Shown here: positions 1 through 11,478 of the stretch, piece after piece | Layout of the letters: every line of letters begins with the position of its first letter | How positions within the stretch are numbered: position 1 is the first letter of the stretch | Assembly (NCBI GenBank): GCA_037447605.1 | Contig: CM074811.1 | Coordinates: forward strand, 1,488,001 to 1,552,000 | From: Zygnema circumcarinatum SAG 698-1b | Lineage: Eukaryota; Plantae; Zygnematophyceae | Direction of reading: 5' to 3' | Length of the DNA stretch: 64,000 nt | Notes under the pieces: model-generated | Databases searched by the model: none | What the model saw: only the letters and a program-made list of their open reading frames with translations | What the model was told of the DNA's origin: nothing | Position numbers and translations under genes: made by a program

Positions 1-1
1 C

Positions 2-2617
2 ATCACCTTTCTTGATGATTGCTCAAGGAAAGTATGGGTGAAAACGCTCACCAAGAAATCGGAAGCTTTTCAGGCCTTCAAGGAGTGGCAGCTGCAGGCC
101 GAGAGGGAGACAGGGATGAAACTAAAAACTCTAAGGTCAGACAATGGTGGAGAGTACACTTCTCACCAGTTTAGAGATTACCTGAAGTCCCTCGGAGTGA
201 AACATGAGTTCACTGCCCCTTACTCTCCTCAAAGTAACGGAGCTGCTGAGAGGATGAATAGGACGCTAGGAGATATGGCAAGGACTATGCTGAATGAGTC
301 GCCATTTCCGCTATCGTTTTGGGCTGAGGCGATCACGGCGGCAGCGTATATTCGGAACAGGTGCCCTACATCTGTCTTGAAGGATAAAGTTCCGGAGGAA
401 GTGTGGACAGGCAAGAAGCCGACTGTTGAGCACTTTCGAGTTTGGGGCTCAAAGTGCTTTATTCACGTTCCAAAGCACAAGCAAGCGCAGAAGTTCAGTC
501 CTCGATCTGTGGAAGGATACTTCCTTGGCTACAATGAAGATAGCCAGACTTACCGGATCTGGAACCCAGTCACAAAGAAGGTGGAAAGGAGTCGTGACAT
601 AATTGTGCAAGAATTCCACAAGTATTCAGAGAAGCTGGATGGAGAGAAGGACGTGAACACGAGAAGGCTTGTGTTTCCATGGGTTCCAGAAGATTCAGGA
701 AGGGCTGAGGAAGCAGCATTACCACGGCCAGATATTCAGCATAGCCCACCGATGGAGCATGTCACTAATCCGCTAGATTCTGTACCTGAGGAGGGACCGC
801 TTGAGGAGGAAGCACCCGAGGAGGAGGAGCCATCAGCGGACTTGCAGGTGCAGCCAGCAAAGGAGTCAGGAGAGAGGCAAGGATTCACTCCAAACTATGA
901 GAACAGGAGTGATCGTCCAAGGAGGCAACCTGGTTGGTTGGCAGACTACCACCAACCACCATATTGGAAGGCAAAAAGGACGAAGAAGGTCAGAACACCT
1001 AGTGACTCAGCTGACTTTGCTGGCATTGCTGCGTGCATGATGGCTCATATTTCAGAACCTCAGAGTTATGCGGAAGCTTTGCAGGGTGAGGATGCTGAAA
1101 AGTGGAGGGCAGCAATAGATAGTGAGCTGAATAGTTTGAAAGTAAATGGAACCTGGAGATTGGAGGAGCTTCCTAAGGGTAGGAAGGCTATAGGCTGCAA
1201 ATGGGTGTTTAAGGTGAAGCGGAAGGCAGATGGGAGCGTAGATCGCTACAAGGCCAGGCTGGTTGCAAAGGGGTATAGCCAGAAAGAGGGCATTGATTAT
1301 TCGGAGACTTTTGCACCAGTGGTTAAGTTCAATTCCCTTAGATCACTCATTTCGATTGCAGCAGCGGAGAGAATGCATGTCCATCAACTTGATATAAAGA
1401 CTGCATTCCTCTATGGAGATCTAAGTGAGGAGATTTATATGGAGCAGCCGGAAGGCACAGTGGTGGAAGGACAAGAACATCTCGTATGCAGGCTGGTAAA
1501 GAGTCTTTACGGCCTCAAGCAAGCACCCCGGATTTGGTACCAGAAGATAGATGATCTTTTACGGAGGAATGGATACAAGCGGTTTGAGTCAGACCACTCC
1601 GTCTACAGTAAAGGTACCGGGAAGGAGCTGCTATACGTGGGCATTTACGTGGACGATCTGATCATTGTAAGTTCCTCCATGCAAAGCATTCAAAGTCTGA
1701 AGGATTTGATGAAGGAGAACTTCCAGATGACAGATTTAGGAGAGGCCCAATATCTGTTGGGAATTCAGCTCAAGAGGGGGCGAGATGGTAGTTTGTTCCT
1801 TTGCCAAGAGAAGTACGCTAAGGATGTCCTAGCGAAGTTCAGAATGGACAAGTGCACTCCATGCACAAGTCCCATGGATATGTCACAGAGGCTTTCAGAA
1901 TCCATGTCACCCCAGTCTCAAGAGGAGGCGAAGAAGATGGAGAATGTACCATACAGGTCTGCCATTGGAAGCCTGATGTACCTGATGATTGGCACGAGGC
2001 CAGATCTTGCTAAGGCGGTCAGCGCAGCCAGCAGGTACATGCAGTTCCCTGGGGAGCGGCATTGGGAGGCGGTGAAGAGAATATTCAGGTTTCTGAAGGG
2101 GACTGTGGACTATGGGATTAAGTTTGAGGCAGGGAGTGGAAGTCAAGTGTATGGTTATACGGATGCAGATTGGGGAGGGGATGTAGACACTGCTAGATCC
2201 ACCTCAGGATACGCATTTGTGAACAGCGGAGGAGTTGTGACTTGGAGCTCGAAGCTTCAAGATTCTGTGGCGCTTTCAAGCACTGAGGCGGAGTATATGG
2301 CAGCCTGCCATGCAGCCAAGGAGGCCGTCTGGCTGCAGCAATTCTTCGAAGAGTGTGAGCGGCCCCAACTCCCTTTGAGGCTGTTAACTGATAACCAGTC
2401 TTCTATGACTCTAATGCAGAATCCTGTTTTTCATAAGAGGTCAAAGCATATCAGGATTCAATATCACTTTGTCCGTGAACTTGTTGTTGAAGGAAGGATA
2501 GCTGTGGATTTTGTGCCTACAAAGGATCAAGCAGCTGACATGCTCACTAAGGGGGTCAATGGGGAGGCGCTGTGGAAGAACAGCATGCTTCTAGGATTGG
2601 GGCCTCTTAAGAACTAA
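2..2617 (+). CDS. Copia Pol polyprotein, C-terminal part, open with no stops
   Basis: The frame is open from base 2 (ITFLDDCSRKVW). It has the integrase motifs LDD, RSDNGGEY and NGAAERMNRTL, an SH3-like YFLGY...YRIWNP segment, RT motifs KARLVAKGY, LYGLKQAPR and YVDDL, and RNase H motifs YTDADW, STEAEY, DNQS and ADMLTK. Confidence 0.97.
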   Translation: MTFLDDCSRKVWVKTLTKKSEAFQAFKEWQLQAERETGMKLKTLRSDNGGEYTSHQFRDYLKSLGVKHEFTAPYSPQSNGAAERMNRTLGDMARTMLNESPFPLSFWAEAITAAAYIRNRCPTSVLKDKVPEEVWTGKKPTVEHFRVWGSKCFIHVPKHKQAQKFSPRSVEGYFLGYNEDSQTYRIWNPVTKKVERSRDIIVQEFHKYSEKLDGEKDVNTRRLVFPWVPEDSGRAEEAALPRPDIQHSPPMEHVTNPLDSVPEEGPLEEEAPEEEEPSADLQVQPAKESGERQGFTPNYENRSDRPRRQPGWLADYHQPPYWKAKRTKKVRTPSDSADFAGIAACMMAHISEPQSYAEALQGEDAEKWRAAIDSELNSLKVNGTWRLEELPKGRKAIGCKWVFKVKRKADGSVDRYKARLVAKGYSQKEGIDYSETFAPVVKFNSLRSLISIAAAERMHVHQLDIKTAFLYGDLSEEIYMEQPEGTVVEGQEHLVCRLVKSLYGLKQAPRIWYQKIDDLLRRNGYKRFESDHSVYSKGTGKELLYVGIYVDDLIIVSSSMQSIQSLKDLMKENFQMTDLGEAQYLLGIQLKRGRDGSLFLCQEKYAKDVLAKFRMDKCTPCTSPMDMSQRLSESMSPQSQEEAKKMENVPYRSAIGSLMYLMIGTRPDLAKAVSAASRYMQFPGERHWEAVKRIFRFLKGTVDYGIKFEAGSGSQVYGYTDADWGGDVDTARSTSGYAFVNSGGVVTWSSKLQDSVALSSTEAEYMAACHAAKEAVWLQQFFEECERPQLPLRLLTDNQSSMTLMQNPVFHKRSKHIRIQYHFVRELVVEGRIAVDFVPTKDQAADMLTKGVNGEALWKNSMLLGLGPLKN

Positions 2618-2633
2618 GTACCAAGAGGGGGAA

Positions 2634-3300
2634 TGTTAGTGAGTGGTACATAGTTCATGAAGAGCATGTAGTTGTTTCGGAGTCTAGTTCGCATGCTTGT
2701 CTAGGATCTACACATCAGGTGGAGCATGTGGCGCATTCCCTCGATTGGCCGTCGTGACAGCGCTGAGCGCCGGGTGGATTGGTCGTAGTTACGTGGCTGG
2801 AGGTGTGATTGTACGGACGGGGAGCTCCAGAAAACTCGCGGCGTTCCTTTTGCCGGAAAACTATTGGCTTGCAAGGCGCGCAGTGGCGTGACGTGACGGA
2901 GAGTGTTCCGGAAGTCACGTCACACTGTGACTAATAAATTACGATGCAAATGAGCGAGCTAAAACCCTTAGTGCAGGCTGCTAGGTGCAGAGTAGAGGCT
3001 TGCCAGTGTGTGGTGAAGCTTTACAGCATAAGGGGGACACTCTTGTAGTGGAGTAGAGAAGCGCAGGAGGGGCTCTTGTTGTGTTCTTGTACTCCGTTTT
3101 GAAGTTAAGAGTTTTTAGCATTTGTGCATTCTCTTATCTTCTGAATCTTCGATCTGTTCATTCATTCTTTGCTTGGGGCAGTCTGTGCTTTGTGAGTGTG
3201 ATTCTGTGTTTCCGCAAGGCTGGCGTCTCCTAGTCCAAGGAGTAGTGGGATGTCATCCTCGGAGGGATCTTCTACTAGGACCGGAGGCTCCACATCTACA
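2634..3300 (+). repeat. 3' LTR of the Copia element (about 667 bp, TG...CA)
   Basis: It starts with TG right after the polypurine tract and ends TCTACA at 3300, where the 27-bp array begins mid-unit. A 10-bp inverted repeat GTGACGTGAC/GTCACGTCAC lies at 2888-2923. The right end is inferred because the 5' LTR is outside the window. Confidence 0.75.
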
Positions 3301-3800
3301 CCGACCACTGAATCCAGGCGGGCAACCACCAGTTGTATGCAATGGCTGGCAACCGACCACTGAATTCAATGGCTGGCAACCACCGGTTGTCTGGAATGGC
3401 TGGCAACCAACCATAGAACCCAATGGCTGGCCATCAACCGTTGTAGGCAATGGCTGGCAACCGACCATTGAGTCCAATGGCTGGCAGTCAACCGTTTTAT
3501 GCTATGGCTGGCAACCGACCACTGAATCCAGGCGGGCAACCAACAGTTGTATGCAATGGCTGGCAACCGACCACTGAATCCAATGGCTGGCAACCACCGG
3601 TTGTATGCAATGGCTGGCAGCCGATTACTGAATCCAATGGCTGGCAACCACCGGTTGTTTGAAATGGCTGGCAACCGACCACTGAATCCAATGGCTGGTA
3701 ACTAACCATTTGTTCCAATGGCTGGCTTCCAACCATTGGTGCCAATTGCTGGACTTCAACCATCTGTTCCAATGGCTAGCAACTAACCATTGAAACCAAT
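3301..3800. repeat. 27-bp minisatellite, about 18.5 units, with an alternating 54-bp higher-order structure
   Basis: Units of AATGGCTGGCAACC plus 13 nt start at 3341, 3368, 3395, 3422, 3449, 3476, 3503, 3555, 3582, 3609, 3636, 3663, 3690, 3717, 3744 and 3771. Two 25-bp variants start at 3316 and 3530. Confidence 0.95.
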
Positions 3801-4629
3801 GCGCACCCCTCTCTGGAGGCGCGTGTCAGGTCACGTCACGCGCGTCAACCGTAAGGTCGGACTAGCCAATTAGAATCCACCAGGTGTCCCAGCAGCTGGC
3901 GGTCTCAGGACAGCCGTAAGCGGCCGTGCTGAAACGCCTGGCGGGAAACTTGTCGTTTGGGGCCAGGCGTCGCTGGCCCGGCTCGCCTCGGTCGGCGCCG
4001 GCCGGCGGAAAATATCGCCAGTAAATACCGATACGTATGCCCTATACGGCTATACAGTATGATTAGGGGGAGTCAGACCTTGACCATCGCCCGCGGAATT
4101 GCAAGATTTCGACCGCGGAATTGCAAGATTTCGACCGCGGAAAGGTATTGATTTCGATTTCCGAATTCGGATCGGAAACCACGGCTCCTCCCGAACCTGT
4201 CTGTCACGTCCGTACGGCGGAATAGGTTACAAAAATGCCCCCAAATTTCAGAATTCCGCGCTCCGAAACGGGGGGCCTCTGGAGGGCCCCCGTTTCGAAA
4301 TTCCAGCTTTCCGCCGATCAGGAATCGTGCCCCGCCTTGTCGCCATGCGCGTCACGCACGTGCGAGCGCCTCACCGCCGCCGCTCGGACGCCGCGACCCG
4401 CCGCAGCGCAGAGCAGCGTTTCAGGGCTGGCACAGCTATAGGGTTTCTCTTTCTCCCACCAACATCACCCACTTTGCGGCAACCACTTCCTCACGGACCT
4501 CATAAGCACCACGGGAGAGTGGTCAGCGAGAACGCGAAGTGACGACGGCGGAGTTGAGCAGCGGTAAGTCCTTGCCCTTGCACCTGCCCCTGCCTCCCTC
4601 GCCCTGGCCCATGCCTCCCTTGTCTCCCT

Positions 4630-4638
4630 TGCTGCTCT

Positions 4639-4675
<37 letters not shown>

Positions 4676-5055
4676 TTTTTTTTTGCTGCTTCTTTTTCTG
4701 CTGCTGTTGCTATTGCTGTGCTGCTGTTGCTCGTGCTGCTGTTGTTCCCCCTGCTGCTGTTGCTGCTACTGCTGCTGCTGGTGCTGGCTGCTGCTTCTGC
4801 TTCTGCTGTTGTTACTGCTGCTGCTTCTGCTGTTGCTACTGCTGCTGCTTCTTTTTCTGCTGCTGCTGCTACTACTGCTGTTGTTGTTGCTGTTGGTGGT
4901 GGTGCTGCTGCTACTACTGCTGTTGTTGTTGCTGTTGGTGCTGCTGCTGCTGCTGCTGCTTCTGCTTTTGCTGTTGCTCTTATTGTTCTGTTTTTTTTGC
5001 TGCTGCTTTTTCTACTGCTGTTGCTCCTATTGCTTCTGCTTCTTTTTCTGCTGCT
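4630..5055. repeat. (CTG/TTG)n trinucleotide low-complexity tract
   Basis: Directly visible. It explains the poly-Leu, poly-Ala and poly-Cys ORFs in the track. Confidence 0.95.
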
Positions 5056-5267
5056 GCATTCCGCATTCCCCATTCCGCATTTCCCATTCCGCATTCGGCA
5101 TTCCGCATTCCGCATTCTGCCTCCCTTGCACCTGCTCCAGCCTCCCTTGCCTTTGCCCCTTGTTGTGTTGCCCTTGCCTCTGTCTTCCTTGCCTTGTGCC
5201 CCTCGTTCCTTTGCTTATGCTTCTGTTGTGTGTATGATTGTATGTCATTCCTCCCTCTCCCTATTAA

Positions 5268-5338
5268 GTTGAAGTGGCGAATTGGTTACGCAACTGTTGC
5301 AAAACAGTAATAAAGGGGTTCAAATCCCCTCTTCAACT
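5268..5338 (+). tRNA. tRNA-Cys(GCA)-like cloverleaf, copy 1, with a non-canonical anticodon loop; function unproven
   Basis: Acceptor stem GTTGAAG/CTTCAAC is 7/7 paired. U8 is present. The D arm is GCG-AATTGGTTA-CGC, the anticodon arm ACTGT-TGCAAA-ACAGT, the variable loop AATAA, and the T arm AGGGG-TTCAAAT-CCCCT (5/5). The discriminator is T and T-runs follow downstream. Confidence 0.6.
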
Positions 5339-5710
5339 TGTAGTGTTTATTCACTTTTCTATTTTTATTTATTTAAACTTTTTGTGTTTTGGCTTCATAT
5401 GCCAAATATTTGTTGTTATTTTTTTTTAGTTGTTTTTATTCTATCTATCTATTCTTTATTCTATATTTTATCCTATCTGCTGCGGCTGTTGCTCTTGCTG
5501 CTGTTGCAGCATTCATTTTTTTTGTTTTTGATGCTGCATTTTGCAATACGCATTTTGCCTCCCTTGCACCTGCCCCAGCCTCCTTTGCCTTTGCCCCTTG
5601 TTGTGTTGCCCTTGCCTTTGTCTTCTTTGCCTTTGCTTGTGCCCCTCATTCCTTTGCTTATGCTATTGTTGTGTGTATGATTGTATGTCATTCCTCCCTC
5701 TCCCCATTAA

Positions 5711-5789
5711 GTCAAAGTGGCGAATTGGTTACGCAACTGTTGCAAAACATTGCAACAGTAATAAAGGGGTTCAAATCCCCACTTCAACT
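5711..5789 (+). tRNA. tRNA-like cloverleaf, copy 2, with an 8-nt longer anticodon arm (possible 9-nt intron) and a damaged acceptor stem
   Basis: GTCAAAG/CTTCAAC pairs 5/7. The D loop and T loop match copy 1. The anticodon arm ACTGTTGCAA-AACA-TTGCAACAGT forms a perfect 10-bp stem. Confidence 0.45.
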
Positions 5790-5968
5790 TGTAGTGTTTT
5801 TTTATTCTTGTATTTTTATTTATTTAAAGTTTTTGTGTTTTTGCTTTATATGCCAAACATTTGTTGGTATTTTTTTTAGTTGTTGTTATTGCTTTTTACC
5901 ATCTCCTTCAAAACTTTGAATTGGGTTGTTGTTGTAGCGCAATTTAGAACATTGGATACGCTTCTCCC

Positions 5969-6166
5969 ATGAATGTACACATGAAACACAAAGTAATGGC
6001 TTGTGTGGAATCTCAAGTGAAGATGCAACGACAAAGACTGGAGTGGGAGAAACAACAATGAGAGTTTACTGAGGCAAGGCGAATCCAAGATGAAGAAGAA
6101 GAACAAATATTACAAATATAAGATTCTCAAGAAGAACAAAGGTTACACATTATTGGAGCAGCGTAA
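5969..6166 (+). pseudogene. Decayed coiled-coil ORF fragment, possibly the C-terminus of a transposon accessory protein
   Basis: It reads MNVHMKHKVMACVESQVKMQRQRLEWEKQQ*EFTEARRIQDEEEEQILQI*DSQEEQRLHIIGAA*. The two internal stops (TGA, TAA) are each one C>T change from CGA and CAA. An acceptor-like GTTGTAG lies upstream at 5931-5937. Confidence 0.45.
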
Positions 6167-6499
6167 AAAATCTATTACTGTTAAAACATGATATTATTTG
6201 CATTTAGAATCGCTTAAAATAGAATACAGGAGTACTCATAAAAGTGTGTGCACAAAGAGAGGGAGGGAAGGAGGCCAGGGGGGGGTGTCTTAGTGACGCC
6301 AGTACTTACTAAATTGAGAATGAATGGCACAAGTTTTTATAACAAGACATGGTTTTTATTTTGTATACAAAAAGTATTTTTATATATGTTTGTGTGTATG
6401 TATATATGTGTATGAATTATTTGCGTTAATGTGTTTTTATAAGAACAAAGAAAGAGTAGTAGTTGTGTATGCTACAAGGAAGATTCAGAAACATTTATA

Positions 6500-6920
6500 C
6501 AATCTCATCAATTGAAACAAATAAAGGTAAAAAGCAAAAAAGACAACAAAAAAATAACAACAAATATTTGACATATGAAGCAAAAACACAAAAACTATAA
6601 ATGAATAAAAATAGAATAAACACTACAAGTCGAAGAGGGAATTTGAACCCTTTTATTACTGTTTCGCAATCGTTGCGTAACCAATCCACCACTTCAACTT
6701 AATTGGAAGGGGAGGAATAACATACACTCATACACAACACAAGCATAGGCAAAGGAACTGGAGGCGGTAGACTGAGGCAAGGGAGGCAAAATGCAGAATG
6801 CAGAATGCGGAATGCGGAATGCTGAATAGGGAATGCGGAATGCAGAATGTAGCAGCAAAAAAAAAAGCATGCTGCAACAGCAATAGCAGTTCAGCGATAG
6901 CAGCAATAGTTGTTTTTATA
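6500..6920 (-). repeat. Third, inverted and more diverged copy of the ~430-bp unit
   Basis: The reverse complement reproduces (GCATTCC)n, the CT-rich segment, the cloverleaf and the T-rich tail. Confidence 0.9.
6628..6698 (-). tRNA. tRNA-like cloverleaf, copy 3, degenerate
   Basis: The reverse complement reads GTTGAAG TG GTGGATTGGTTACGC A ACGATTGCGAAACAGT AATAA AAGGGTTCAAATTCCCT CTTCGAC T. Confidence 0.4.
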
Positions 6921-7002
6921 ACAAGAGAAAAACCTGTTTTTTTTTTTTTTTATGAGCGCGCGCGGATTCGTAGGGAGAGAGAGAGAGAGAGAGAGAGAGA
7001 GG

Positions 7003-9139
7003 AATATTTTGTCTGCCCGCCCCGCCGTGAAGCGATTTTTGAGTTCGAACTCGGGCGGAGAGTGAGATCAGCCCATGTGGACTCCACCGACAAATTCCAA
7101 AACGACAAGTAAATGTACAATCATTCGTACACATGTACCCGCGAGTTGCCCGAGCCAGCTGGCGCGTCCCCAGTGGTCGGTGTGGGATGGGGTAGGGGCC
7201 CTGAAATTTTCCCTGCCCGCCACTGGCATCCCCGGAGGGGCGACAATTCGGCCTGCGATTAGGGTTGGGAGGAGCTTTCTTCCCTCTCTCCCTCTGCCTC
7301 TTCCGCAGGCAGGCAGGCAGCCAGCCAGCCATGGCGCAGGCCTGCGCAAGTCTCCTTCGTCGCCGGGGATTTGAATTTGAATGGCATGTGTAGTAAGGAT
7401 GTTTTAGTTCAGGGTAGGGGGAAGAATGCAGAATATGTAGGATTGAGGCATGGAAAGGGGGAGTGGGAGTGGGAGATAGCGTTGGTGTGAGAGAGGAGTG
7501 GGTTTGGAGGGAAAGGGAAAGCAGAATGGCGTCGAGAGGCTCGGGAGTGGAGACTCTGAAGGAGAGGCGCGTGGAGGACATGGCTTCGAAGGAGGCTGCA
7601 GCGAAGTTCAACTCTGCTGCGGCTTTCGTGGAGTCGGGAGTGCAGGAGGTCTATGAAGATGCCTGCAGTATTTGTCTGGAAACGTTCACAGAAGAGGAGC
7701 CGCTCACTGTAAGTTCGAAGGTCCTTTTAGATAGCTACATGATGGGAGTGATTTGCTCGTAACATGTGGTCATCGTTTCTAGCGTATGAGTTAGTGGGTA
7801 CTGATGCTCTGGATAGTTATCTGGCTCAAGGGTTTGTGCAAGCAGGCGATAATGCTTCTTGGGTTGTGGAAACCTTATGGAATTGAGAAGTGTTTGGGCT
7901 TACGTGGGCGCCATGTTTGGCAGTCGGTGCTGATGCAAAATTAGTACAGTGACTCGGTTCAAACGCTTTTGAACGGAATTTTGGTTATGTCTAACATCTC
8001 TGAAAGGTCGTTCTCGCCACTTTTCGTTTCTTTGCAGCTGACGACTTGCAACCACGATTACCACCTACAATGCATTTTAGAATGGTGAGAGCAGCATATC
8101 TCTGGAGGGTTGTGCGTTGTTAGTATGTGTCCATGATTATTTTTTGGATTGATACTTTCGGAGGTTCTAGAAATTTATGCACCACGCATAAATTTCTTTC
8201 AATCATTATCACTGTCACTTCAGTTGTTCTTTTTTATTTCATTTCATATTGTTATGCTTACCTCATCTCAACGAGTCGACTTTAGCGGAAAGTAGACCCG
8301 CAGTTTCGAACTGGTTTGAACGGCGTACTGAGGGTGGGAGGTGGTCGGGAATGACCTTTTAATTTTTTATTTTGTGTGCCTGGTTTTGTATGCCATGGCG
8401 GTCGACCTACTGAACATATTCTAGCATCAGTAGAGACAGCATCAAGTAATGTTTGAAGGACAGAAATGCTAGCGTTTTTTTCTGCAGGCAGACGCTTGTT
8501 CTGCTGTGTACTGAAGTGTTTAGATTATCTACATCAATATAGCGAAAGGAATTGACTGGAAGGGAGTGTCATTACGCTTTACTGTATTGCATCGTGTACT
8601 TCTCGTGGTTAGGTAATGAAAGTGGGGCACCCCTAAAGACGTGGTCTGCATGACAAGGGTTAGCTGTGATTCTGGCGGCACTTCGCTGCTTCACATACTT
8701 CCTCGTTTGAAGCGTTATTCTTTTGCTTGTGGTGGATTTCAGGGCAAAGCGGGGACAGGAATGCCCTATGTGCTGGCAGCCCCTCAGTCTGAAGGACCCT
8801 GAGAGGTATGTTGAACTTGAACCTGCGCAGAATCAGTGCGTTTCTTTGTGGTGCAGAATTACGATGCAGCCATAGTTTGCGAGTCCAGACTGGTCAGACA
8901 TAACGAGCAATTCAGCGTTGTTGCTGTTGCAAAATCGGAGCAGTTCAAGCCATTCTTGTTCGTTCGCTTTATTATTTAGTTGACTGTGTCCCCATTTTTG
9001 TTTCGGCGTGTTTTTGCAGTCAAGAGCTACTCGCCGCTTGCTTCCAAGAGCAGGCCTTTCATGCAAGTTCTGTATATACACCTCCGTTTATGCGCTCGCC
9101 ATTTGAGGAGTTCGAGTTTCAGCCCAAAGTGCGATTCAA
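7003..9139 (+). repeat. Segmental duplicate of 10847-13052 (promoter and exons 1-4 of the RING-H2 gene)
   Basis: Exons and introns 1-3 are near-identical by eye. Similarity ends just after GTGCGATTCAAC in both copies. Confidence 0.95.
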
Positions 9140-10800: not shown

Positions 10801-11478
10801 GGATCCACACTAAAGCGGATGTTTATGGATTTGTAAATATTATGAAAAATATTTTTTCTGCCCTCCCCTCCGTGAAGCGATTTGTTTTGTACTGTAATTG
10901 AGTTTCTCCGGCGGGGGCGAGAGCGGCCCACGTGGACTCCACCGACAGATTACAAGACGACAAGTAAATGAACAAAGCTCCGTACATGTGTACGGTGTCC
11001 GATGCCGGCGATGGCGGCTGCGGCCGAACATGACGCAACCGTACGGCCGTTGAAATCGTCACTTTTTTCGGGCAGGTCGAGTGAGCTCGAAGCTTCCTTG
11101 CGCTGCCCATGCCAGCTGGCGCGTCCCCAGTGGTCGGTGTGGGAGGGGGAACGAGCCCTGAAATTTTCCTTGCCCCCGTTGTCCCCCCGCCAAGATGGAA
11201 CAGGGGCGACATTTCGGTCTGCGATTAGGGTTGGCCGGTGCCTCTTTCTCCCTCGCCCACTTCCCGCAGGCAGGCAGGCAGCCATGGCGGAGGCCTGCGC
11301 CCGTCTCCTTCGTCGCCGAGGCTTTGAATGTGTATGGCATGTGGAGTAAGGATGTTTAAGTACAGGGTAGGGGGAAGAATGCAGAATATGGAGGATTGAG
11401 GCATGGAAAGGGGGAGTGGGAGTGGGAGATAGCGTTGGTGTGAGAGAGGAGTGGGTTTGGAGGGAAAGGGAAAGCAGA

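Follow-up and report, generated by a model that had tools for sequence, protein, structure and literature searches.

The three tRNA-Cys-like sequences in the window, which is the whole 64-kb stretch of DNA that was analysed, are probably amplified tRNA relics within a composite repeat, a family that is unable to decode and whose copies are drifting neutrally. The original prediction, which is supported, was that a repeat carries an amplified tRNA-Cys-like cloverleaf in the middle of its unit rather than at the 5' end. The ~440-bp unit consists of (TGC)n and (GCATTCC)n tracts, a CT-rich block, the tRNA-like module, and a T-rich tail. Three units are present, two in tandem and one inverted, and the window holds only these three copies of the module. 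The units make up a foldback-like block (4571-6946), with a Ty1/copia element on one side and a RING gene promoter on the other. Its parts are the following:

4571-4632, + strand: left edge of the repeat block, an incomplete CT-rich module (86% over 36 nt to 5123-5158)
4630-5055, + strand: (TGC)n-type microsatellite tract (TRF period 3, 116 copies; derived periods 12 and 15; families D1 and D2)
5056-5117, + strand: (GCATTCC)n 7-mer array of unit 1 (TRF period 7, 8.9 copies; inverted partner 6786-6849)
5118-5267, + strand: CT-rich module of unit 1 (substitutions 5.3% vs copy 2 and 17.8% vs copy 3)
5268-5338, + strand: tRNA-Cys-like module copy 1, the best preserved, with the anticodon arm one base short (Rfam and ARAGORN)
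5339-5437, + strand: tail of unit 1, T-rich (contains a small hairpin, 5388-5406, that is conserved; T4 runs begin 16 nt past the module)
5438-5555, + strand: linker joining units 1 and 2, of degenerate TGC / 7-mer sequence (alignment; inverted match I18 to 6858-6882)
5556-5710, + strand: CT-rich module of unit 2 (repeat alignments)
5711-5789, + strand: tRNA-Cys-like module copy 2 (Rfam, fold, and pair counts)
5790-5900, + strand: tail of unit 2, T-rich (unit 2 matches unit 1 at 88.5% identity across 356 nt)
5901-6535, no strand: central spacer separating the two arms, itself of moderate copy number in the genome (DNA word depth 240-620)
6536-6627, - strand: tail of unit 3, T-rich and inverted (89% complementary in the inverted repeats I3 and I4)
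6628-6698, - strand: tRNA-Cys-like module copy 3, anticodon GCG (Rfam, fold, and pair counts)
6699-6785, - strand: CT-rich module of unit 3 (56 nt internal deletion vs copy 1, by alignment)
6786-6849, - strand: 7-mer array of unit 3, of the GCATTCC type in reverse complement (TRF period 7, 9.1 copies)
6850-6946, - strand: short TGC-type tract and T-run at the right edge of the repeated block (depth drop)

The direct copies lie 438-451 nt apart and are 89-93% identical, and the inverted arm matches, of 81-105 nt each, are 88-89% complementary. The inverted arms as a whole are long (5001-5437 against 6536-6905, in segments that are 85-89% complementary) and are made of tandem sub-repeats in variable number, namely (TGC)n, (GCATTCC)n, and CT-rich repeats; the left arm has two units and the right arm one. 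The right edge, ~6946, is marked by a drop in DNA word depth (215 before it, 15 after it) and by a fall to 0 in the RNA-type runs. The left edge is blurred, with sequence left of 4571 also present in paralogues, where 4548-4570 abuts the CT-rich module directly, as shown by a loose end at 5561. In paralogous contigs the tail of copy 3 continues into 6179-6536. The spacer (5901-6535) has no significant likeness to the unit in local alignment, and a degenerate third unit considered at 5900-5960 was rejected, its alignment score of 17 falling within those of shuffled sequences (mean 14.5, maximum 24).

The unit is a multi-copy family of the algal genome. When contigs from sequencing runs were compared over 5120-7720, the (TGC)n tract and left 7-mer array (4630-5117) being left out, 760 contigs of the DNA run X1 matched at a likeness of at least 80%, most of them 90-95% alike. 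Word depth over the module in this run is 2,790-3,730, compared with 63-95 in most single-copy flank bins (~40 times), and it reaches 54,886 on the 7-mer array at 6786-6849. An ORF-based homologue search for further copies of the family, with 5282-5677 as the query, gave no match. Contig joints between "opposite strands" were considered as evidence of hairpin RNA and rejected; they link the + left arm to the - right arm, which is one unit orientation, and are therefore tandem junctions of paralogues.

Three further runs (X15, X6, and X26) are RNA-like: 6947-7207 has a depth of 0, the RING exon is deeply covered, and a spliced loose end is seen at 7708. The module occurs in them only inside contigs of 116-783 nt, and assembled contigs of this kind can reveal neither a tRNA-sized Pol III transcript nor the ends of an RNA. 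RNA depth does not track DNA copy number: the 7-mer array has ~15 times the depth of the module in DNA, and the two are about equal in X15. That the block might be an intron in the 5'-UTR of the RING gene (GTAAGT at 4566, AG at 7524) was considered and rejected because an RNA contig is unbroken over 7322-7708 and the stretch 6947-7207 has no RNA depth.

The presence of three tRNA-shaped sequences in the repeat was confirmed. Copy 1 scores 51.7 bits against the Rfam tRNA model RF00005 (E 3.3e-8 for the whole 64-kb window), with every position of its cloverleaf aligned to the model; in a permissive scan copy 2 scores 31.6 bits and copy 3 scores 24.9 bits, the latter under the gathering score of 29. 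ARAGORN finds copy 1, which it reports as tRNA-??? with the four-base anticodon gcaa. The features first listed for copy 1 are all present in the sequence, including a perfect 7-bp acceptor stem and 5-bp T stem, U8, A14, the D-loop GG (G18G19), the T loop TTCAAAT, a GCA triplet, U73, T15/A48, and a D stem of only 3-bp; A13/A22 are unpaired. The minimum-energy fold of this copy from RNAfold is cloverleaf-like, with z = -3.5. The GCA anticodon and U73 can be seen in the sequence of copies 1 and 2; the anticodon of copy 3 is GCG. Copies 2 and 3 are cloverleaves in part only: two acceptor pairs and one T-stem pair are broken in copy 2, while the minimum-energy fold of copy 3 has no cloverleaf and its anticodon and T stems are broken. 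The module appears unlike cytosolic tRNA-Cys in build, judged by the general features of eukaryotic tRNA-Cys.

The anticodon arm is one base short in all three copies, at 16 nt instead of the usual 17, and therefore normal decoding is impossible for any of them. Infernal alignments of copies 1 and 3 place a one-base deletion in the 5' strand of the arm; the arm of copy 2 is masked in its alignment by an insertion of its own. The arm predicted by RNAfold has a 6-bp stem and a 4-nt loop with GCA inside, and the combination of a 5-bp stem with a 7-nt loop is absent. The insertion in copy 2 consists of 8 nt (5746-5753), is private to that copy, and forms a perfect 10-bp palindromic hairpin. For these reasons the intron once proposed for copy 2 is rejected in favor of a private palindromic insertion. 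Removing 9 nt from this copy was said to leave a canonical loop; a 7-nt loop does result, but its stem is only 4-bp.

In the three copies compared, the divergence of the module is close to that of its flanks. Substitutions in the module and in the flanks are 4.2 vs 7.7%, 11.3 vs 13.7%, and 15.5 vs 16.6% in the pairwise comparisons, so that the nominal value for the module is slightly lower each time (Fisher p 0.43 to 1.0). No compensatory change was found among 20 pairs, six of 60 cells are unpaired, and stems vary at least as often as loops, although these tests of covariation and rate rest on three aligned copies and have little power. The original prediction would have been abandoned if mutations were as frequent in stems as in flanks and no transcript were detected. 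Stems do mutate as often as flanks; transcripts exist, yet only as longer RNAs.

It is unlikely that the modules are kept as internal Pol III promoters or TFIIIC sites, whether for SINE-like transcription of the tRNA with a trailer or as ETC-type insulator or boundary sites distributed by the repeat. The consensus match is 10/11 for the A box and 10/11 for the B box in copies 1 and 2, but copy 3 is down to 9/11 in both. A T-run (T4-T7) begins 7-16 nt downstream of each copy, although such runs are expected regardless at 30%-GC. The D loop and T loop are identical in copies 1 and 2, where all three differences are in stems, yet the divergence of the module is not significantly below that of the flanks. 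The block lies ~400-2,000 nt upstream of the transcribed RING gene, but the RNA contigs that bear the module exceed the length of a Pol III unit. With near-intact A and B boxes and downstream T-runs, the modules may nonetheless bind Pol III or TFIIIC. The well-kept boxes and T loop of copies 1 and 2 also fit selection for a Pol III promoter. If recruitment of TFIIIC or Pol III did occur, then a boundary or promoter module would have been spread across the genome.

It is improbable that this nuclear repeat family of a streptophyte alga captured a tRNA-Cys of organellar or bacterial type and keeps its acceptor/T-arm along with the A and B boxes, either for TFIIIC/Pol III recruitment or for excision by RNase P/RNase Z from long transcripts of the repeat, with a small tRNA-like RNA as the product. 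If this reading were true, the nucleus would have gained, from a tRNA of organelle type, a mobile element with a regulatory or processing role. There is very little likelihood that the fold is a processing signal, by which RNase P and RNase Z would excise the module from long Pol II transcripts in a mascRNA-like manner and so set transcript ends or release a small tRNA-like RNA. The acceptor/T-arm minihelix that these enzymes recognize is perfect in copy 1, but the acceptor stem of copy 2 is broken; the module does lie within longer RNA contigs, but these pass through it with no cleavage visible, and contigs cannot show ends in any case.

Helenus elements (TRIMp3) are miniature LTR retrotransposons of plants, fungi, and animals with a tRNA-like sequence in their LTRs (PMC10886601). 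The units could be compared to the LTRs, or to the LTR and internal region, of such an element in Cassandra-like tandem arrays, since two direct units ~440 nt apart each contain a tRNA-like module. This explanation is hardly credible, however, and was rejected for want of a PBS: no initiator tRNA-Met PBS is present in 4400-7400 at up to 2 mismatches. The unit bounds have neither a polypurine tract nor TG..CA ends, the linker (5438-5555) is a pyrimidine-rich microsatellite, and, in further contrast to Helenus, the third unit is inverted and microsatellites of variable length are found within and between units.

A search pattern built on the D arm, YTGCAAA, and B box of the module matched more than 120 loci in prokaryotes and also more than 120 contigs of viruses, and every match examined is a tRNA-Cys gene. 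The bacterial style first noted for the module is supported for its D arm, anticodon loop, and T loop. Features shared with the bacterial and phage genes are the 3-bp D stem, unpaired 13/22, a D loop of equal length, YUGCAAA, the GGUUCRANUCC T arm, and U73. In contrast to the module, those genes have a 17-nt anticodon arm and belong to ordinary tRNA arrays, and none is near enough to be the donor. The best matches are true tRNA-Cys genes in phage tRNA arrays, with up to 55/72 identical bases, a count that includes 31 positions fixed by the search pattern. The suggestion of a recent foreign capture was not borne out, as scans of phage, plasmid, viral-contig, metagenome, and prokaryote sequences gave no near-identical tRNA. 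A phage or plasmid donor was rejected with a best blastn E of 0.06 and partial matches only. The exact D-arm 20-mer was found in two JGI metagenome contigs, both of them bacterial coding sequence without a tRNA, and the exact D-arm 17-mer was found in 24 viral contigs, none with a tRNA there; the T-arm plus acceptor word had zero matches among viral contigs. It is extremely unlikely that the modules are a family of functional tRNA genes, taken up recently from a bacterial, organellar, or viral source and encoding either an odd tRNA-Cys or, with an 8-nt loop, a quadruplet decoder: the perfect acceptor and T stems, GCA, and U73 of copy 1, its four-base anticodon in ARAGORN, and the bacterial-type architecture would suit such a family, but the anticodon arm is short in every copy and places GCA in the 4-nt loop of a stable fold, copies 2 and 3 are broken with uncompensated stem mutations, divergence is flank-like, identity to the bacterial and phage tRNA-Cys genes found is limited as described, the exact D-arm and T-arm scans gave chance matches in coding sequence or none, and hundreds of decaying copies are unlike a family of decoding tRNA genes.

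The modules are better explained as amplified relics. One tRNA-derived module would have become fixed inside the composite unit, with the three cloverleaves as its copies, and the unit would multiply both tandemly and in inverted orientation. The founder is proposed to have been a tRNA-Cys of bacterial or organellar architecture from which one base of the anticodon arm had already been lost; the whole family would therefore be unable to decode. Neutral drift of the copies would then account for stem pairs that break uncompensated, one palindromic insertion, and one change of anticodon to GCG. Residual activity, if any, would come from the near-intact A and B boxes through putative binding of TFIIIC or Pol III. 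We infer that the amplification was by a non-autonomous foldback or tandem-repeat element and that the source of the tRNA was organellar, not foreign.

This is no new principle, since tRNA-derived repeats are common. There is a practical consequence for annotation: gene finders will call the module a tRNA or an odd "quadruplet" tRNA at hundreds of sites in the genome, and it should be masked as a repeat. If the donor were the mitochondrial or plastid trnC of the alga, then the family would clearly exemplify a nuclear repeat that originated from organelle DNA. A unit that is built from microsatellites and grows in tandem and inverted orientation would widen the range of elements with Pol III promoter-like cassettes, because it fits neither SINEs nor TRIMp3. 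Since the block lies directly upstream of the RING gene, it might conceivably have a local effect on chromatin or transcription.

Among known kinds, the closest resemblance is to foldback or tandem-repeat elements, and the element does not fit a SINE or a Helenus-type TRIM. Neither termini, target-site duplications, nor a transposase could be recognized; for the duplications this refers to a reading of the unit and block borders, which are themselves uncertain. Helitron-type ends (TC...CTRR with a 3' hairpin) were rejected, as the hairpin at 5388-5406 has no CTRR after it. Like tRNA-derived SINEs, the family is a many-copy tRNA-derived sequence that matches the A-box and B-box consensus but has ceased to encode a functional tRNA. 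In SINEs, however, the tRNA-derived head is at the 5' end, while here 150-230 nt of conserved sequence precedes the module, with the CT-rich and 7-mer modules standing before the tRNA-like part in all three units. The tail of the algal unit is T-rich rather than A-rich, with no sign of a poly(A) or LINE-type tail, and the units are tandem and inverted. SINE heads usually derive from cytosolic tRNAs, whereas the tRNA here is of bacterial or organellar type.

The tRNA-Cys cluster on chromosome 5 of Arabidopsis thaliana, whose 0.4-kb repeating units overlap Helitron annotations, has several features in common with the algal repeat, including a tRNA-Cys(GCA)-type sequence in a ~0.4-kb tandem unit, transposon-like sequence, a variable number of units, and pseudogene copies (PMC10701932). 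The Arabidopsis genes are mostly expressed, with 11 of 13 sequence variants positive by RNA-seq, and form one small local cluster (PMC10701932); the algal modules are defective, derive from another type of tRNA, and are dispersed at high copy number with inverted copies.

Foldback and MITE elements have terminal inverted-repeat ends and target duplications, neither of which could be defined in the algal element. To our knowledge, a tRNA-like core has not been reported for foldback elements. For the tandem-repeat-containing MITE DTC84 of the clam Donax trunculus, the published abstract likewise describes no such core (PMC3879986). Foldback elements and MITEs such as DTC84 resemble the algal element in being non-coding composites with tandem sub-repeats in their arms or core, a variable number of repeats, many copies, and inverted arms that are able to fold back.

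The locus is probably an amplified tRNA relic within a composite repeat, and its three tRNA-Cys-like modules form a decay series. Across the 64 kb of the window ARAGORN called a single tRNA-like gene (5267-5339, +), of undetermined type and with a four-base anticodon (gcaa), and the Rfam tRNA model matched 5268-5338 end to end (51.7 bits, window-wide E 3.3e-8). In a permissive scan of 5000-7000 with the same model, copy 2 reached 31.6 bits and copy 3 reached 24.9 bits, which is below the gathering score of 29. The cloverleaf claimed in the original prediction is therefore real, far beyond chance. The modules and the larger parts of the repeated block are as follows.

4571-4632: partial CT-rich module, left side
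4630-5055: long (TGC)n expansion, left side
5268-5338 (+): copy 1 of the tRNA-like module
5711-5789 (+): copy 2
5901-6535: spacer between the inverted arms, 635 nt
6628-6698 (-): copy 3

Copy 1 has a perfect acceptor stem of 7 bp and a perfect T stem of 5 bp, a D stem of 3 bp with A13 and A22 unpaired, U8, A14, GG in the D loop, a TTCAAAT T loop, a GCA triplet, and a discriminator U; the features previously listed for it were borne out by the sequence, the Rfam alignment, and the copy alignment. Its anticodon arm is one nucleotide short (16 nt, against the usual 17), with a one-base deletion in the 5' stem strand (Infernal), and RNAfold favors a 6-bp stem with a 4-nt loop containing GCA. The shortened arm is common to all three copies in the alignment and so was already present in the family founder. 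In copy 2, two acceptor pairs and one T-stem pair are broken, and an insertion of 8 nt (5746-5753) turns the arm into a perfect 10-bp palindrome in the predicted fold. Since this insertion is palindromic and, among the three copies, private to copy 2, it is a local palindromic insertion; the amplified tRNA of the original interpretation stands, but the intron proposed for copy 2 is rejected. Copy 3 reads GCG at the anticodon; two pairs of its anticodon stem and one of its T stem are broken, and the cloverleaf is lost from its minimum-energy fold.

Compensatory changes were found in none of the 20 pairs of the three-copy alignment, three pairs showed G-U variation through single transitions, and 6 of the 60 cells were unpaired. 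Substitution in the module was compared by Fisher test with that in the flank, defined as the CT-rich block plus the tail.

Substitutions in module and flank, by pair of copies
Copy 1 and copy 2: module 4.2%, flank 7.7%, p 0.43
Copy 1 and copy 3: module 11.3%, flank 13.7%, p 0.68
Copy 2 and copy 3: module 15.5%, flank 16.6%, p 1.0

Changes within the module were at least as frequent in stems as in the rest of it (3 vs 0 and 6 vs 2). These rate and pair data from three sequences argue weakly against a maintained RNA structure. The original prediction had named stem mutations as frequent as those of the flank, together with an absence of transcripts, as evidence against itself; the former is seen, weakly, in the three copies, but the latter is not, as RNA contigs carry the module.

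Repeat finding, alignment of the three copies, and a blastn search of the window agreed on one unit of about 440 nt. In order, it comprises a (TGC)n-type tract, an array of (GCATTCC)n 7-mers, about 150 nt of CT-rich sequence, the tRNA-like module, and a T-rich tail that is about 100 nt long and contains a small conserved hairpin. Units 1 and 2 lie in tandem (spacing 438-451 nt, 88.5% identity over 356 nt) and unit 3 is in inverted orientation, with arm segments 85-89% complementary; blastn found no further unit in the 64-kb window. A loose end at 5561 shows 4548-4570 abutting the CT-rich module in paralogues, so the family extends left of 4571. The GC-rich stretch 3801-4570 closes with a segment that resembles an exon and carries a GTAAGT donor at 4566. 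In paralogues this segment, with GTGAGT, runs straight into the CT-rich module, and it is present in an RNA contig; 3801-4570 may be a promoter and first exon of the repeat family.

Contigs of four public runs were aligned at a likeness of at least 80% to 5120-7720, a span that starts to the right of the long (TGC)n expansion and of the 7-mer array on the left side. The DNA run (X1) gave 760 contigs, mostly 90-95% alike, with a summed word depth of 2,790-3,730 over the module compared with 63-95 in most single-copy flank bins; the spacer is likewise repeated (240-620), and word depth places the right end of the repeated block at about 6946. Although depths are not copy numbers, these show many diverged family copies. 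Over the 7-mer array at 6773-6859 (GCAGAAT / GCGGAAT), DNA word depth sums to about 54,900, some 800 times that of the flank, and the 7-mer is evidently one of the genome's major satellites.

The other three runs (X15, X6, and X26) behave as RNA, since depth is zero on 6947-7207 and high on the RING gene exon, and the loose end at 7708 runs on with sequence at 8040, a splice. They carry the module within contigs of 116-783 nt, with depths that do not track DNA copy number; in DNA the 7-mer array is about 15 times as deep as the module, and in X15 the two are about equal. The family is therefore transcribed, and is seen only within longer RNAs in contigs that are unstranded and blind to tRNA-sized RNA. 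Copies 1 and 2 retain 10/11 of the A box and 10/11 of the B box, and a T4-T7 run begins 7-16 nt 3' of each copy, so Pol III transcription or TFIIIC binding at the modules would be possible, though we consider it unlikely. Release of the module from the long transcripts by RNase P and RNase Z would be a further, very unlikely, possibility.

The RING gene mRNA starts near 7322 in the contig data, which makes the repeat block upstream intergenic DNA; a 5' intron of that gene was rejected on the same grounds. Over the RING first exon (7322-7720), RNA and DNA contigs disagree with the window at some 3-5% of positions and carry a 3-nt insertion at 7556; either the strains sequenced are not identical to the assembly, or there is a close paralogue. 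Sequence 5' of the gene (7003-7298) is duplicated about 3.8 kb downstream, past the gene end (10848-11264, 75-77% identity). On the other side, 1-3300 is the 3' part of a Ty1/copia retrotransposon, with an open pol frame (38-2617: integrase core, SH3-like, and RVT_2 domains, the last at 271 bits), a purine tract, and a probable 3' LTR, which spans roughly 2634 (TG...) to 3300 (...CA); because the frame is intact, the element may be young. Directly adjoining this LTR is a tandem array (3300-3801) of about nine copies at 74-81% identity, in which the motif CAATGGCTGGCAACC... recurs every 54 nt or so.

Searches of 50,697 phage records and 72,556 plasmid records gave no significant match to the module. 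A structured pattern derived from it (D arm, YTGCAAA, and T arm; 31 fixed positions) matched at least 120 prokaryote loci and at least 120 viral contigs; among the matches listed, the prokaryote loci were largely Proteobacteria, and identity to copy 1 was 37-55 of 72 after extraction and alignment. The five best-matching loci scanned were ordinary tRNA-Cys genes in phage tRNA arrays, so the module is built like a bacterial-type tRNA-Cys. In eukaryotic cytosolic tRNA-Cys the D stem is 4 bp long and of the GCUC/GAGC type, a build that we take to be unlike that of the module. Four phage contigs (L140, L234, L227, and L127) have arrays of 7-9 tRNA genes, with a tmRNA in addition in L234, and share a distinctive tRNA-Cys beginning GUG that is nearest to the algal module among the matches listed. 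No donor can be named; the best match listed shares 24 of 41 bases outside the fixed positions, and exact D-arm and T-arm words gave chance matches in coding sequence or nothing. The most economical guess is the alga's own mitochondrial or plastid trnC, since organelle tRNAs have a bacterial build and the module and tail are AT-rich.

As to class, the element does not qualify as a strict SINE: the module does not stand at the 5' end, and there is no A-rich tail and no visible target duplication. A Helenus-type TRIM (PMC10886601) was rejected, since 4400-7400 holds no initiator tRNA-Met PBS at up to 2 mismatches, PPT and LTR ends are absent, and one unit is inverted. The best fit appears to be a foldback-like or tandem-repeat-containing non-autonomous element, because the inverted arms are long and made of sub-repeats of variable number, the copies are many, and there is no coding capacity. 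No defined termini or flanking duplications were recognized at the block. The tRNA-Cys cluster on Arabidopsis thaliana chromosome 5 (PMC10701932) differs in consisting mostly of expressed genes and in being one small local array.
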